A stretch of DNA of 64,000 bases, from positions 62,001 to 126,000 of the IMG/VR virus record IMGVR_UViG_3300005289_000016, one strand, 5' to 3'. The stretch's first letter is position 1, and each line of letters starts with the position of its first letter. Below, piece after piece: positions 5,228 to 30,141 of this stretch. The notes under the pieces are model-generated. The model was given only the letters and a program-made list of their open reading frames with translations, did not search any database and was not told the DNA's origin. Position numbers and translations under genes: made by a program.

Positions 5228-6710
5228 TCTCGTATTCCGTGAGCGTTCGGGCTACAAGGACATGCAGCTCCGTCCTTATTACGCCGATGCCACCAAAGAT
5301 TTGATCGGTGAGTTGGACCGCGATACCCGTGGTGGTGATGACCTGACTCCTGCGGCCCTGAGCCGTGTGGCAGGCCGTATCATCCGCCCGGCCGCCCAGC
5401 ACCAAGGCGCAGCTATTATCGCCAACGGCTGGGGCGAGAAGCGGTTCATGTTCATGATGACCGTTCTGGTCCGCAAGAGCCGTACCGACATCCGGACCCT
5501 GGAGATCTCCGGTTATACCGACTACGTGGGTGCTTCCCAAGGCATCCGTGGCGTCAAGCTTGATGAGAACATGGCGCTGTACTTCAACTCGGTCACAGAG
5601 CTGAACCAGAGCTACATGGATACCCCGACCCGTCGCGGTTGGCAGACCCAGATCGCCAGTTCGAACCACCTGATTGCGCCTCAAGTCATGCCGGACTTCA
5701 GCCGTGATCGGATGTCCGCCGGGACACTGGTAATGCGTCCAGAAGACGTGTTCCACAATAACCCGAAGAACGTGGTGTCTAACGCGTTCAACCGCCGTGC
5801 CGAGAAAGAGAACTACCTGGACATGCGCCATGGGTTCACCGGCAAAGGCCTGCGGATGTCCAACCGCCTCAATGACTCGTCCACTCGTTACTTGCACCGC
5901 TCGATCAAAGCGCTGGCAACTGCAAACGAAGGCGAAGTGTTTGGCCAAGGCAATGCGTTCGACCGGGACACCGGCTCGATCCTGAAGGATGCCCGTTCTC
6001 AGGTCCGTGAGAAGACCGTGAGCAGCATCCCAGTCCTGGCTGACATTGCTCGTGAGACCAACATCCTCGAGCAAGGCTTCATCACCTACGGTGAGCTGAT
6101 CGCCATGAACCCGGACTATGTCTGGGACGACGTCAAGGTGTTCTTCGAGCGCCCTGAGACTGTGGACACCTTCCACAACCGTTCTGGTTGGTCGGGTCGT
6201 GACAACAGTACCATCGCTGCGATCCAAGTGGTTCGTGCGTTGCCAGCGTTCATGGCGTTCCACCACATTGCGTACGTCGAATTCACGGCGGACAACATGT
6301 CGGCATTGGGTGAGCCAGTCATCATCATCCCGCAGTGCCTCCCGATCATTGGCAAGCAGATCACCGATCGCTCGCTGATGGCATTCGAAGAGCGCATGGT
6401 CACTGAGCTGTTCTACGACATGCTCCCGTGGCCAGACTGCATGTTTGAGATCGAAGTCCGTGCCGGTCTGGCCAACGACATCGTGATCAAGCTCAAGCTG
6501 GAAGGCGAAGATCCGTTCGAGGACACCTTCCCAGTCTTCTGTGACTCCTTGGTACCACCGGTCATTGTGAATGATCAGGACACCATCGGAGCCATGAGTT
6601 CCTCGCTGACCGACATCGTCGAAAGCCTGGGTGCTGGCCGTCGTGGCCGGGACGATCCAGACTACGCCGATGCACCGGTCCTCAGCAACAGCGGCAATTT
6701 CAATTTCTAA
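5214..6710 (+). CDS. picA: PicA/Imp1-like phage-nucleus protein import factor (phiKZ gp69 position)
   Basis: About 500 aa, directly after the gp68-like gene; ATG 5214 follows GGGAG; N-terminal IANGWGEKRFMFMM segment. Assignment is mainly by synteny. Confidence 0.65.
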   Translation: MQLIDLVFRERSGYKDMQLRPYYADATKDLIGELDRDTRGGDDLTPAALSRVAGRIIRPAAQHQGAAIIANGWGEKRFMFMMTVLVRKSRTDIRTLEISGYTDYVGASQGIRGVKLDENMALYFNSVTELNQSYMDTPTRRGWQTQIASSNHLIAPQVMPDFSRDRMSAGTLVMRPEDVFHNNPKNVVSNAFNRRAEKENYLDMRHGFTGKGLRMSNRLNDSSTRYLHRSIKALATANEGEVFGQGNAFDRDTGSILKDARSQVREKTVSSIPVLADIARETNILEQGFITYGELIAMNPDYVWDDVKVFFERPETVDTFHNRSGWSGRDNSTIAAIQVVRALPAFMAFHHIAYVEFTADNMSALGEPVIIIPQCLPIIGKQITDRSLMAFEERMVTELFYDMLPWPDCMFEIEVRAGLANDIVIKLKLEGEDPFEDTFPVFCDSLVPPVIVNDQDTIGAMSSSLTDIVESLGAGRRGRDDPDYADAPVLSNSGNFNF

Positions 6711-25756: not shown

Positions 25757-26218
25757 ATGTCATTAACGATCGTGGAACAAGACCTGTTTGACGTCCCTGC
25801 CGACACCCGTGTGATCACGATCAATCTGGTCGGGGCAATGGGAGCCGGTGTGGCTCGAACTGCCCGTAACACGGTCCCAGGGCTTCACAAGCACTATCGC
25901 AAGATGTACCCAACGATTGAGCCAGGGAACATCATCACGTATAAACACGAAGACATGCGTTACCTGCTGGTGCCTACCAAACTGGACTGGAGAGATTCTT
26001 CTCCACGGAGTCTGGTGATTCATCACATCAACAAGTTAGCCGTCTTGGCCAGCCGGCACAGACTCGGACGCATTGTCTTACCACCATTAGGTTGCGGTCA
26101 TGGCGGGTTGAGTTGGGAAGACGATATTCAGTACGTCTACCGGGCTCTCTATCCGTTCATTGAAGCAGACATCACAGTCGCTCTAGGCGACAGCAGGAGA
26201 AAGAATGGAAGGTCCTAA
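25757..26218 (+). CDS. Macrodomain protein, DarG/Poa1p-like ADP-ribosylhydrolase
   Basis: INLVGAMGAGVA, LVPTKLDWR and LPPLGCGHGGLSW match the DarG-type macro motifs. Confidence 0.8.
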   Translation: MSLTIVEQDLFDVPADTRVITINLVGAMGAGVARTARNTVPGLHKHYRKMYPTIEPGNIITYKHEDMRYLLVPTKLDWRDSSPRSLVIHHINKLAVLASRHRLGRIVLPPLGCGHGGLSWEDDIQYVYRALYPFIEADITVALGDSRRKNGRS

Positions 26219-27568: not shown

Positions 27569-27683
27569 GAAACACCGGTGGTGGCACATCGCCGGTACTT
27601 TTAGGGGGTCTGTAGAAGGCCTATTCTAGCCTGCTCCGAGACTAGCGTACCCGTCCGCAACATGGCTCGGCTATGAGACCCCC
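27569..27683 (+). ncRNA. Candidate structured leader or small RNA
   Basis: TATG at 27566; ACCGGTG/CGCCGGT hairpin; GGGGGTCT/AGACCCCC stem enclosing TAGAA/TTCTA and CCGAG/CTCGG stems. Confidence 0.45.
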
Positions 27684-27714
27684 GCCTATTTCAATAACCG
27701 GTAAGGAACTACCG

Positions 27715-28578
27715 ATGCAACTGAATTCTTTCTACACTGGCAGCAAAGTGGTTGGCGCTATCCCAATGTCTCACGACGATTTCTGTCGTTACGTTGGCCG
27801 TGATATCGACCCAGAAGCACTGGACCTCACTGGTTATCTGGTGGAGTACCTGGACGGCGGCAAAGCCAACCACCCGGGCCACGTTGGTTACATCAGCTGG
27901 TCTCCTTCCGAAGTGTTCGAGAAGAACTACATCAGCATCGGTGACATTACCGGCCTAGCGCCGTTCATCATCCGCTTGAAGGCTGAGCGGGCTGAGAACT
28001 ACGACCGCCTCCAGAAGCTGCGTAGCTTCCTGGACATCCAGGACGAGAAGACTCGTGACGAACCTCGTACTGACGAGCGTCAAGCGTTCCTCGACAAGAT
28101 CCCGACCCTGGACATCCAGCATCTGGCCCTGCAACAAGAGCAACTGCGCCTGATGCAAGGTCTGGAAGAAGTTCTGACCCAGCGCTTGGAATTACTGGTA
28201 CCAGAAGCCCGTGTCGAGCACAAAGCCTCGATCCGTTTCTCGGTAGCCAACGGCACTCGCTTCGACATCATGCCACGCGTCTTCAAAGCGCTGGAAGGTC
28301 AGATCGACGCCTGCTGCTACACCGGCACCATCTACAACATCCCGGTCAACTCCATCAAGGTCTTCGGCCAGAATGGCGATCAACTCGATGACGCTACTGT
28401 GCGTGTTGAGAAGATGGTTCGTGGTTTCGGCATCTCTGGCGACATCGGTGAAGAACTGTTGTTCGACATCGGCATGGACGTCCAGCGCGGCATCACTCAC
28501 GTGACCAGCTCGTTCTCGGAAGACTTCCAGATCGAGATCGAAGTACAACTGGCCGACATCAATCGTCGTCTGGTGTAA
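27715..28578 (+). CDS. Phage protein with N-terminal YLVEYLDGGKANHPGHVGYISWSP domain and coiled coil
   Basis: AAGGA RBS before ATG 27715; the N-terminal motif is common in uncharacterised phage proteins. Confidence 0.7.
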   Translation: MQLNSFYTGSKVVGAIPMSHDDFCRYVGRDIDPEALDLTGYLVEYLDGGKANHPGHVGYISWSPSEVFEKNYISIGDITGLAPFIIRLKAERAENYDRLQKLRSFLDIQDEKTRDEPRTDERQAFLDKIPTLDIQHLALQQEQLRLMQGLEEVLTQRLELLVPEARVEHKASIRFSVANGTRFDIMPRVFKALEGQIDACCYTGTIYNIPVNSIKVFGQNGDQLDDATVRVEKMVRGFGISGDIGEELLFDIGMDVQRGITHVTSSFSEDFQIEIEVQLADINRRLV

Positions 28579-28615: not shown

Positions 28616-28685
28616 TTATGCCCCGTCTTTCAACTAAGTCCTTGTATTCGTGTAAAAAAATACACGATGGTTATAGTCTATGTGA

Positions 28686-28737
28686 AGTGCCCTTGTCCCT
28701 TGACTTTCGGTCGTAAGCGGAAAACGTCCTGGGCACT
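28686..28737 (+). ncRNA. Candidate three-way-junction RNA at the start of the non-coding island
   Basis: AGTGCCC/GGGCACT closing stem, GAC-TTTCG-GTC hairpin; TATG at 28679 just upstream. Confidence 0.45.
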
Positions 28738-28745
28738 GAAGCGTT

Positions 28746-28853
28746 TGAGAAAGGGCCTGGCCGCCTGCGGCCGTGATCCGTGCAGCCTTTGAGCAAGCAG
28801 AGGGATCGGCAGCCTTGTGCAGCCACTTGCCGCCGGCGCTGGGCCCTTTCTCA
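28746..28853 (+). ncRNA. Candidate 108-nt structured RNA with a long terminal stem
   Basis: Perfect 12-bp TGAGAAAGGGCC/GGCCCTTTCTCA, internal GGCCG/CGGCC and GATCC/GGATC stems, three GCAGCC copies. Confidence 0.55.
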
Positions 28854-28861
28854 TCCTATCC

Positions 28862-28950
28862 GGAGAGATTTCTGAGCGGTCAAAAGAATCAGACTGTAAA
28901 TCTGACGTGCGTAGCGCACTTCGTAGGTTCGAATCCTTCTCTCTCCACCA
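28862..28950 (+). tRNA. tRNA-Tyr(GUA)
   Basis: GGAGAGA/TCTCTCC acceptor, TCAGA-CTGTAAA-TCTGA anticodon arm, long variable arm, GGTTCGAATCC, encoded ACCA. Confidence 0.95.
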
Positions 28951-28957
28951 TTTCAAT

Positions 28958-29013
28958 GACGGTCGCAGCAATGCGAGGTTGACCCCGCACTGAATCAACA
29001 GTGCCTGTCGCCA
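28958..29013 (+). ncRNA. 56-nt tRNA-like mini RNA ending in GCCA
   Basis: GACGG/CTGTC terminal stem plus GCCA; TCGCA/TGCGA and GCACTG/CAGTGC hairpins; no T-loop consensus. Confidence 0.55.
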
Positions 29014-29015
29014 TA

Positions 29016-29092
29016 GGTTCTATAGCTCAGTTGGTTAGAGCACCGGCCTGTCACGCCGGGGGTCAGGGGTTCAAGTCCCCTTAGAGCCGCCA
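29016..29092 (+). tRNA. tRNA-Asp(GUC)
   Basis: GGTTCTA/TAGAGCC acceptor, CCGGC-CTGTCAC-GCCGG, GGTTCAAGTCC, GCCA. Confidence 0.95.
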
Positions 29093-29097
29093 CATTT

Positions 29098-29176
29098 AGG
29101 GGTGTAGCCAAGTCTGGCCTAAGGCAACAGGTTTTGATCCTGTCATTCTCTGGTTCGAATCCAGATGCCCCTTCCA
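29098..29176 (+). tRNA. tRNA-Gln(UUG)
   Basis: AGGGGTG/TGCCCCT acceptor, ACAGG-TTTTGAT-CCTGT, GGTTCGAATCC, TCCA. Confidence 0.93.
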
Positions 29177-29185
29177 TGTTGTATA

Positions 29186-29287
29186 GTTCACTGCCCATTG
29201 GCCGCATAGTCCCGCAAGCCCCTTCAAGGCGAAGCGAATGGGACTGGCAGCGCAGGGGTTCTGGGTACAGCCCAGCAGTGAACGCCA
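29186..29287 (+). ncRNA. 102-nt tRNA-like RNA with an 8-bp acceptor stem and GCCA end
   Basis: GTTCACTG/CAGTGAAC plus GCCA; CTGGG/CCCAG arm stacked on it; central arm AGTCCC/GGGACT ending in GCC-CCTTCAA-GGC. Confidence 0.6.
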
Positions 29288-29288
29288 T

Positions 29289-29364
29289 TCCGCGATAGCT
29301 CAGTTGGTAGAGCATACGGCTGTTAACCGTAGTGTCCCTGGTTCGAGTCCAGGTCGTGGAGCCA
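29289..29364 (+). tRNA. tRNA-Asn(GUU)
   Basis: TCCGCGA/TCGTGGA acceptor, TACGG-CTGTTAA-CCGTA, GGTTCGAGTCC, GCCA. Confidence 0.95.
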
Positions 29365-29367
29365 TAC

Positions 29368-29550
29368 GCGCTCGAAAGAGCCAAACAGTAAGGTTGGTTA
29401 AATTCCGACACGCTGACCGTGGGCAGTTGCGAAGGGAGTGCGGTTCGATCCCGCATGATAAGTCTCAGAGGCAATAACCTCTGAGTAACTCTGGTGAGAC
29501 AAATGGTCAGGCCGACCCGGCCTTTAAACGCACTGGCGTAATCCAGTCGA
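29368..29550 (+). ncRNA. Candidate multibranch ncRNA containing T-arm modules
   Basis: GCTC-GAAA-GAGC; GTTGG-TTAAATT-CCGAC; TGCGG-TTCGATC-CCGCA; CTCAGAGG/CCTCTGAG; long-range CTGACCGT/ATGGTCAG. Confidence 0.55.
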
Positions 29551-29563
29551 GGGGTGGAGATAT

Positions 29564-29674
29564 AGTCCTGTAGCTCAGTTGGTTAGAGCGCTGCCTTTTC
29601 AGGCCGGACCCTTCGGGGTCGTCGGCCTAACAGACACGGCGGAGGTCGGTAGTTCGAATCTACCTAGGACGACC
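29564..29674 (+). tRNA. Atypical tRNA (Glu-UUC-like) with a 35-nt insertion in the anticodon loop; functional status unknown
   Basis: Intact D arm TAGCTCAGTTGGTTAGAGC, anticodon stem CTGCC/GGCGG, AGGTC, T arm GGTAG-TTCGAAT-CTACC. The 42-nt loop holds a cUUCGg hairpin; 6-bp acceptor pairing; no CCA. Confidence 0.75.
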
Positions 29675-29680
29675 CTTTCA

Positions 29681-29735
29681 ATCAGCGGCATTCATGCGCG
29701 GCGCGCATGGTGTACTCGGACGAGGTCCCGCTGGT
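29681..29735 (+). ncRNA. Candidate small structured RNA
   Basis: ATCAGCGG/CCGCTGGT stem enclosing CATGCGC/GCGCATG and GGAC/GTCC hairpins. Confidence 0.4.
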
Positions 29736-29750
29736 TGGATTCAGTTAGAC

Positions 29751-29902
29751 GATGATATAGCTCAGTGGTAGAGCGGTGAGGGTAAAGACGAGACTCGGGT
29801 TCGATTCCCGGAGGACTGTGCTAGAACACAGGCCTTAGCTCAGTGGTAGAGCGCGGTCGTGCACCTTGCAGGCGTCGGTTTGATTCCGGCTATCGTCGCA
29901 CC
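29751..29902 (+). ncRNA. Twin, strand-swapped tRNA-like RNA with two D arms and two T arms
   Basis: Two identical TAGCTCAGTGGTAGAGCG D arms, two T arms, outer 7-bp GATGATA/TATCGTC acceptor, inner loop-capped AGGACTG/CAGGCCT acceptor. Confidence 0.7.
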
Positions 29903-29904
29903 TA

Positions 29905-30050
29905 CACGTCTCATGGGTGTGCACGCCCAGTGAGCTGACTCTACTCGAGGTCCGTCTGAGTAGATGTCAGAGTGTTACCTGATGGACTGCTGTACGATCT
30001 GGCTCATGCCAGCCGCAGCATGTGACTCGACCGAACAGTGGTCGACAAAG
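29905..30050 (+). ncRNA. Candidate multi-hairpin RNA at the end of the island
   Basis: CTCA-TGGGTG/CGCCCA-G-TGAG; CTGAC-TCTACTC/GAGTAGA-T-GTCAG; CTGGC/GCCAG; TCGACC/GGTCGA. Confidence 0.45.
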
Positions 30051-30141
30051 CCTCTAGCTTGCTCGCTTGTCTTTTAAGGCAGGCGGGCAGTTATGCCGTT
30101 TCACTATCGCTTGGGGAAGCGATCCAACTAGGGAGCGTTAC

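Follow-up and report, generated by a model that had tools for sequence, protein, structure and literature searches.

The tRNA Cluster of an Uncultivated Jumbo Phage

The stretch of DNA analyzed here (the window, 64,000 nt) comprises bases 62001-126000 of a 276,032-bp IMG/VR virus record, which is rated complete by CheckV. Its source is an uncultivated jumbo phage with a 276-kb genome of 54% G+C. All tRNA-type genes of this phage, as detected over the whole genome by ARAGORN and the Rfam tRNA model, are located in one cluster on the + strand, and the true tRNAs of the cluster encode their own CCA (NCCA ends). Between tRNA-Tyr and tRNA-Asp lies a 56-nt element at 28958-29013 (+), a four-armed cloverleaf that fills 56 of the 65 nt separating the two genes. 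A sequence-only reading of the window had described the stems and sequence of this segment, and both were found at this position when the DNA was re-read. The cluster is organized as follows, in window coordinates, with positions inside the element counted from G1 at 28958.

28862-28950 (+), tRNA-Tyr (GUA), the upstream neighbor; called by ARAGORN, Rfam tRNA 55.1 bits, encodes CCA
28951-28957 (+), linker UUUCAAU, 7 nt; its final U (position -1) is invariant, and it is gained and lost with the element
28958-28962 (+), 5′ strand (GACGG) of the outer, acceptor-like stem, partner 29005-29009; every alignment cell paired
28963-28976 (+), hairpin 1, 5 bp, with GNRA tetraloop GCAA (GUAA in L049); every alignment cell paired
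28977-28986 (+), short middle arm, pairs G20-C29 and G21-C28, loop UUGACC; covariation
28987-29004 (+), hairpin 3, 6 bp, loop AAUCAA; covariation
29005-29009 (+), 3′ strand (CUGUC) of the outer stem
29010-29013 (+), tail GCCA; purine-C-C invariant among 8 sequences
29014-29015 (+), spacer UA, 2 nt, before tRNA-Asp; 1-5 nt in relatives
29016-29092 (+), tRNA-Asp (GUC), the downstream neighbor; called by ARAGORN, Rfam tRNA 71.6 bits
29098-29176 (+), tRNA-Gln
29289-29364 (+), tRNA-Asn
29564-29672 (+), match to the tRNA model with a 37-nt insert; Rfam tRNA 50 bits
29758-29811 and 29836-29890 (+), two tandem weak tRNA-like cores; tRNA model, 24 and 22 bits

Two reverse-strand ORFs (28678-28998 and 28995-29474) overlap the tRNA genes and were treated as spurious. 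A consensus scan found no promoter-like (sigma-70-like) or intrinsic terminator-like site in or beside the element which, having neither signal of its own, is probably transcribed with the tRNAs. Across relatives of the phage, designated here by L numbers, the cluster is a mosaic of cassettes, and in some relatives it contains GIY-YIG, NUMOD4 or SNase ORFs. ORFs with GIY-YIG, NUMOD4 (faint) and SNase matches are found at L033 7028-7612, L034 5031-5564, L037 5174-5623 and L039 5108-5557. These endonuclease-type ORFs lie in or beside the tRNA clusters of the relatives, the GIY-YIG one being ~1.8 kb downstream, and their presence fits endonuclease-driven turnover of cassettes at the locus.

Additional Conserved Features of the Locus

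The gene at 29564-29672 (+) carries its 37-nt insert as a hairpin in the anticodon loop of the tRNA-model match; it has a 1:72 mismatch and an ACCC end. ARAGORN leaves it uncalled in standard mode; the tRNA-Glu calls made there in the -mt and relaxed intron modes conflict with each other. The gene recurs in L006, L007, L031, L034, L037 and L041 with inserts of 37-44 nt, in which the hairpin sequence changes and the pairing is kept. The insert may be an intron, or the gene may encode a non-decoding tRNA-like RNA. Directly after this gene, a conserved three-way junction at 29669-29745 (+) starts with the same UUUCAAU linker. Read from the sequences, it shows compensatory differences between the window and L006/L007: CAUGCGC/GCGCAUG versus CCUGCGC/GCGCAGG, and CUCG/CGAG versus GGCG/CGCC. 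The two cores at 29758-29811 and 29836-29890 (+) consist of a D-arm and a T-arm (tRNA-model positions 8-63) with no acceptor stem, and run X1 contains a near-identical population variant from which 29737-29904 is missing.

In a conserved structured leader upstream of tRNA-Asn, at 29197-29286 (+), the distant strands UCACUGC...GCAGUGA form a long-range stem, inside which lies the hairpin CUGGGUA.AGCCCAG; every relative has this leader, L037 and L039 in a shortened form. A cassette of ~195 nt at 29365-29560 (+) contains a T-arm-like GUGCGGUUCGAUCCCGCAU and several hairpins; of the fully read relatives, only L049, which is also the most distant, shares it. L049 also encodes, at 5447-5526, an ARAGORN tRNA (Rfam tRNA 62.5 bits) whose 8-nt anticodon loop holds a four-base 'anticodon', tgca.

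The non-coding leader (28690-28860) and trailer (29905-30066) of the cluster, both on the + strand, are conserved down to pPa_SNUABM_DT01 (L214), where their counterparts are at 1400-1550 and 2290-2420. This cultured Pseudomonas aeruginosa phage has a syntenic flanking gene (31% identity) and is without the element. The conservation of leader and trailer as far as this phage suggests a Pseudomonas-like host for the clade. The flanking ORF at 27673-28578 (+) encodes a PF21825 (crAss001_48 / 'Sequestin') domain, and its N-terminal part is common to hundreds of unrelated phages. An upstream ORF at 25757-26218 (+) has a weak Macro-domain match.

Fold of the Element

The outer stem (GACGG/CUGUC) includes one G.U pair, and the two larger hairpins (UCGCA-GCAA-UGCGA and GCACUG-AAUCAA-CAGUGC) have pair probabilities of 0.87-1.0 in single-sequence folding. 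The middle arm has 2 bp and a 6-7-nt loop and lengthens to 3-4 bp in L049. It had earlier been drawn as GG-UUGA-CC, a register that is broken by GC-UUGACC-GC in the relatives; the pairs that are retained instead are G20-C29 and G21-C28. Once the arm is drawn in this way, the junction holds no unpaired bases. The outer stem and hairpin 3 form a potential stack of 11 bp, or of 12 bp if U(-1):R53 is counted. An 11-bp stacked domain close to the top half of a tRNA had been proposed here. The helices for such a stack are upheld; the last loop is not a T-loop and has 6 nt (AAUCAA) in the window and 8 nt in L037 (AGCAUAAA).

Folding of the single sequence gives an ambiguous picture. The default minimum-free-energy fold (-20.7 kcal/mol) is not a cloverleaf and pairs the 3′ GUCGCC with GGUUGAC, and the cloverleaf has an energy of -19.8 kcal/mol in the GG-UUGA-CC register and of -20.3 in the corrected register. 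The outer stem of the cloverleaf competes with other pairings of the 3′ strand and has a pair probability of 0.33, and the shuffle z-score of the single-sequence fold is -2.47. Closing stems followed by NCCA are common genome-wide. A descriptor requiring a 5-bp closing stem, NCCA, at least two hairpins and -0.35 kcal/mol per nt or lower has 6 matches in 552 kb, both strands included; at least three of the five matches other than the element are inside long open reading frames, with two minus-strand matches unchecked. About 0.01 matches are expected in the non-tRNA part of the cluster. Given the ambiguous fold, the modest z-score and the frequency of closing stems with NCCA, a single sequence would not settle the structure.

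Homologs and Compensatory Changes

Homologs were fetched through relatives of the flanking protein, with identities of that protein from 88% down to 45%. The resulting set consists of the window together with L025, L026, L029/L030, L031/L032, L037, L042/L043/L044 and L049, which amount to eight distinct sequences. The phages that carry the element come from compost, rhizosphere, sediment and invertebrate metagenomes. Logan contigs from four public runs add relatives in compost, rhizosphere and freshwater sediment that are colinear across the spacer. Among the differences listed for these contigs (three studies), four fall inside the element, and these four make up two compensatory pairs.

Covariation in homologs had been suggested as a way to check the structure, and the eight distinct sequences provide it, with compensatory changes in all four helices. 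In a MAFFT alignment (A2) of the eight sequences, standard pairs occupy 97.9% of 144 cells, compared with 28-44% when the partners are slid by 1-3 columns. Both-sided changes are found in 6 of the 18 pairs and are spread over all four helices, and the covariation score was reached by none of 500 shuffles (0/500). The changes are the following.

Pair 2:51, A-U to G-C in L042 and L049
Pair 6:19, U-A, C-G or U.G among alleles A and B and L049
Pair 9:16, C-G to U-A in L042
Pair 21:28, G-C in 3 sequences and C-G in 5 (allele A versus the others)
Pair 31:46, C-G to U-A in L049, with a C.A intermediate in L026
Pair 34:43, U-A to G-C in L037, together with the longer (8-nt) loop

Pair 20:29 is G-C, G.U or, depending on the alignment, A-U in L049. 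Pair G30-C47 is invariant in the eight sequences, and hairpin 3 has a single A.G mismatch, in L042. RNAalifold arrives at the same cloverleaf independently and adds the pair U(-1):R53, a U.G wobble in six of the sequences and a U-A pair in the other two. The G4.U49 wobble is invariant, and further G.U pairs occur in L042 and L049. Since the invariant wobble is possible on one strand only, the strand of the element is that of the tRNAs, and the G.U pairs argue for an RNA rather than a DNA cruciform. The version found in the window (allele A) recurs in L029 and another version (allele B) in L025, L026 and L031, a distribution that departs from the flanking-protein tree. Because both alleles recur across the tree, some of the changes among these eight sequences of one clade are shared and not independent.

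Identity of the element to its most distant relatives is 77%. For comparison, tRNAs Asp, Asn and Gln are 78-88% identical in L049 and 82-100% identical in L042, and the flanking protein of the most distant carriers is only 45-51% identical. By these figures the element, where present, is about as conserved as the neighboring tRNAs. For the choice between the cloverleaf and chance, the decisive evidence comes from this comparison of homologs. The element is a selected RNA structure, a four-helix junction encoded on the strand of the tRNAs.

With ViennaRNA set to permit coaxial stacking (dangles=3), the cloverleaf is also the minimum-energy fold of both alleles A and B. The default fold, in which G20/G21 pair with C55/C54, was rejected; this pairing is broken in five of the eight sequences. 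A second alternative is the thermodynamic minimum of allele B. Its inner helix is paired in only 78% of cells and is unable to form in allele A; in its outer helix, which joins positions 4-6 and 8-11 to 48-51 and 53-55, 98% of cells are paired. Folds in which the 3′ strand pairs differently and the GCC tail is buried lie within about 1 kcal/mol of the cloverleaf. According to these folding models, the tail-burying outer helix, which is compatible with nearly all sequences, may represent a second conformation.

An Optional Cassette

The covariance model of the element detects no second copy in the phage's own genome. In each carrier the element lies 1-5 nt upstream of a tRNA, which is tRNA-Asp in seven sequences and tRNA-Asn in L049; no tRNA-Tyr precedes the element in the latter phage. 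L027, L028, L035, L039 and L007 are devoid of the element, their tRNA-Tyr and tRNA-Asp being separated by 6 or 7 nt (7 nt in L007), and in L041 a tRNA-Ile stands in its place. A partial version occurs in L005/L006, where the 3′ end of a 173-nt Tyr-Asp spacer retains only the closing stem and a first hairpin, with no last hairpin or CCA. L005, L006 and L007 were the first IMG/VR relatives and share 66% identity on the flanking ORF at 27673-28578. The empty site reads TTTC-TA, and in the filled site the element and part of the linker are placed between those bases. Such a clean indel separates phages with near-identical flanking proteins (L026/L027 and L037/L039). On the flanking-protein tree, the presence of the element requires at least 5-6 gains or losses, which is no better than for shuffled labels.

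Comparison of these close relatives shows the element to be an optional cassette, either present or cleanly absent. Degradation as spacer and lack of conservation had been named as the findings that would refute the earlier inference. On conservation, the outcome is divided: the element is conserved where it is present, and it is also dispensable, being absent from at least five close relatives.

Further copies were sought in several collections. An exact 27-mer of the element has no match in viral_contigs, and a 17-mer retrieved only the L042 phage and four chance matches in coding regions. A gapped pattern combining the 3′ end of tRNA-Tyr with the 5′ end of tRNA-Asp returned only the window's own contig from metagenome_contigs. 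A degenerate 20-mer gave four matches in viral_contigs, one of which is real. The same 20-mer gave 71 matches in genome_contigs, which is about the chance estimate; these were discarded, all scoring 20 bits or less with the covariance model, by which true members score at least 78 bits. The model found no copy in 76 loci that share the N-terminal domain of the flanking protein, nor in pPa_SNUABM_DT01 at the syntenic position, and a blastn search of 50,697 phage records with the element as query produced only one 28-nt chance match (E=8). Contig, phage-record and covariance-model searches found no copies outside the clade, and neither literature searches nor Rfam 15 yielded a description of such an element. 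Public runs labelled RNA contained only 5-10% of the sampled words, which we infer to be conserved parts of tRNAs.

The Acceptor-Like End

Three features of the element's ends are invariant in the eight sequences: U(-1), the G1-C52 pair and the purine-C-C of R53-C54-C55. The fourth base of the tail is A in five sequences, U in two and C in one. The tail is GCCA in the window, L026 and L031; ACCA in L042 and L049; GCC followed by UA in L025 and L029; and GCCC-UUUGA in L037. The GCCA end on which the sequence-only reading relied is upheld in its purine-C-C, which is invariant, and weakened in its final A, which only five of the eight homologs have. The insert-bearing tRNA-like gene of the same cluster ends in ACCC. 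The phage encodes no CCA-adding enzyme with a PF01743 nucleotidyltransferase domain, so that any repair of CCA would be left to the host.

Proposed Maturation and Rival Explanations

On comparative grounds, the element is a real, optional and previously undescribed small RNA of a phage tRNA operon. The explanation favored here, to which we assign a probability of about one half, is that tRNA-processing enzymes excise the element as an accessory small RNA whose end resembles that of a tRNA acceptor. Its release during the processing of neighboring tRNAs, as had been proposed earlier, is plausible from its position. The element would be co-transcribed with the tRNAs and then freed by the tRNA-maturation enzymes of the host. 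Cleavage by RNase P at +1 of the downstream tRNA would set the 3′ side and leave a trailer of 1-5 nt; 3′ exonucleases would trim this trailer back to the protected end, and a host enzyme would restore CCA where the final A is missing. Two enzymes could generate the 5′ end: RNase E, by cutting within the U-rich linker, or RNase P, by cutting between U(-1) and G1. In the second case, RNase P would recognize U(-1), G1, R-C-C and the stack of 11-12 bp. What results would be a compact, stable RNA of ~56 nt with a tRNA-like acceptor end and no anticodon. Several findings count against this explanation: the full CCA is missing in three of the eight sequences and the phage has no PF01743 enzyme, tRNA models do not recognize the element, the elbow formed by D-loop and T-loop is lacking, competing folds hide the GCC tail at nearly the same energy, close relatives are without the element, and the homologs all belong to one clade.

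The most speculative step concerns the role of such an RNA. It might mimic an acceptor end and thereby compete for, or act as a decoy of, a protein that acts on the 3′ ends of tRNAs, a role useful in some hosts and inessential. We prefer this guess since no part of the element is more invariant than its end. In its full form, the proposal is of an acceptor-arm-only tRNA mimic of jumbo phages that is matured by RNase P and the host CCA enzyme and is a decoy for a host factor attacking or modifying tRNA 3′ ends; stated in such detail it is unlikely. The factor might be, for instance, a defense toxin acting on the acceptor end. The element may then toggle between free-tail and buried-tail forms, and its patchy presence would mirror which hosts carry the targeted factor.

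The main rival to an excised accessory RNA is a cis-acting spacer module, structured and later degraded, that insulates the folding of the pre-tRNA or guides and paces RNase E, RNase P or exonuclease trimming. Such a module, which we regard as possible but less likely than excision, fits an element that is always directly upstream of a tRNA, arrives with its own U-rich linker and sits in an operon whose other spacers (e.g., 29197-29286 and 29669-29745) are conserved and structured; its optional presence also fits a modulatory role. However, sister phages mature the same or nearly the same tRNA-Asp without the element, and insulation leaves the invariant U(-1)/G1-C52/R-C-C end, the G.U wobble and the conserved GNRA loop unexplained. 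Very improbable is a segment with no function of its own, whether the relic of a decaying tRNA gene or a neutral hitch-hiking recombination cassette. Gains and losses of the element do resemble those of the Gln, His, Ile and Ser tRNA cassettes at this mosaic locus, which also takes up homing-endonuclease-like ORFs, and the partial version in L005/L006 could be taken for a stage of decay. Against this, the compensatory changes in four helices, and a conservation as high as that of tRNAs among relatives whose protein is 45-51% identical, indicate that the fold is under purifying selection, and tRNA models detect no residual similarity.

A small self-cleaving ribozyme, HDV-like/theta-like or of a new class, could in principle trim the 3′ trailer of tRNA-Tyr, and theta (minimal HDV-like) ribozymes are known to adjoin phage tRNAs (PMC10879173). 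The HDV helix order is obtained if UCAAU of the linker pairs with GUUGA of the middle loop, the strands following one another as linker, outer 5′ strand, hairpin 1, middle loop, hairpin 3 and outer 3′ strand. However, this pairing has 3-5 bp, with only 3 bp in five of the eight sequences, and at least 3 bp form in 77% of random pairs of like composition; the HDV-like pseudoknot was rejected because the linker-loop pairing is not above chance. In HDV-like/theta ribozymes, the J4/2 strand characteristically begins with the catalytic cytosine (PMC10879173). The element has no such strand, since the outer stem follows hairpin 3 directly and G30-C47 is invariant. A GNRA tetraloop is unable to form P1.1, and the strand that would have to serve for P1 lies within the covarying 21:28 pair. 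The Rfam ribozyme families gave no match to the element at E<=10, and L049 has no upstream tRNA. Together these points make self-cleavage extremely unlikely. Chance hairpins in a G+C-rich spacer would agree with a z-score of only -2.47 and with the genome-wide abundance of closing stems with NCCA, but not with eight homologs that carry compensatory changes or with a descriptor that expects about 0.01 matches in the non-tRNA part of the cluster. Chance retains next to no probability, being refuted by the comparison of homologs.

Annotations of phage tRNA clusters usually distinguish only tRNAs and 'spacer'. Here, one spacer is an RNA under selection that has its own architecture and that enters and leaves the operon like a tRNA gene. 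If released and stable, an accessory RNA of this kind would give the tRNA-like small RNAs of eukaryotes a counterpart in bacterial viruses, and would be a compact natural substrate for defining the minimal requirements of RNase P, 3′ trimming and CCA-adding enzymes. If it is a decoy for a host factor directed at tRNA ends, it would bear on why phages carry tRNA clusters. The further conserved non-coding elements at the locus make this clade promising for new phage RNAs.

Comparison with Known RNAs

The Rfam tRNA model (RF00005, gathering threshold 29 bits) gave no match on 28951-29015 at E<=10 in a 2.5-kb scan or at E<=1 genome-wide, and ARAGORN left the element uncalled in its standard, -mt and relaxed -ps80 modes. 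With canonical tRNA the element shares the cloverleaf topology, a G1-C closing stem, a purine discriminator and CC(A). It likewise resides in a tRNA operon with similar spacers and is gained and lost like tRNA cassettes. It differs in its length of 56 nt, its 5-bp closing stem and a junction that has no linker bases. Whereas canonical tRNA has a 5-bp anticodon arm with a 7-nt loop and a UUCRANY T-loop, the element has no D-loop or T-loop motif and no anticodon arm. Without a T-loop or D-loop, the elbow that is read by RNase P and other tRNA-binding proteins is missing. The earlier description of the element as a minimal tRNA mimic holds in part: the cloverleaf is real and covarying and has an acceptor-like end, but neither the Rfam tRNA model nor ARAGORN recognizes it.

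RNAs of the mascRNA family are excised by tRNA-processing enzymes (RNase P and RNase Z) and given CCA. mascRNA is eukaryotic, derives from the 3′ end of a long non-coding RNA and has T-loop-like features. mascRNA and MEN-beta are like the element in size (about 56-61 nt) and in having a cloverleaf with a stunted anticodon arm. The likeness to mascRNA that had been drawn from the sequence is borne out by the similar size and not by the RF01684 (mascRNA-menRNA) model, which does not match the element at E<=10; the sole regional match of this model is tRNA-Asp, at a weak 16.5 bits. Among phages, the T4 'species 1 and 2' RNAs (RNA C/D) are small stable RNAs other than tRNAs that are co-transcribed and excised with phage tRNAs. 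They are about twice the length of the element, are not known to resemble it in sequence, and have no known function. Theta ribozymes are similar to the element in their size of ~50-60 nt, in their adjacency to phage tRNAs and, superficially, in strand order. The element differs in being tied to the 5′ side of the downstream tRNA and not to the 3′ end of the upstream tRNA.

Bacterial RNase P and the CCA-adding enzyme accept minihelices, in which an acceptor and T-arm stack of ~12 bp is combined with a 3′ RCCA and G+1. The element differs from these substrates in that it has no T-loop and in that the A of CCA is absent in three of the eight sequences. It is like them in its potential stack of 11 or 12 bp, its U(-1) and G+1, and its invariant R-C-C.
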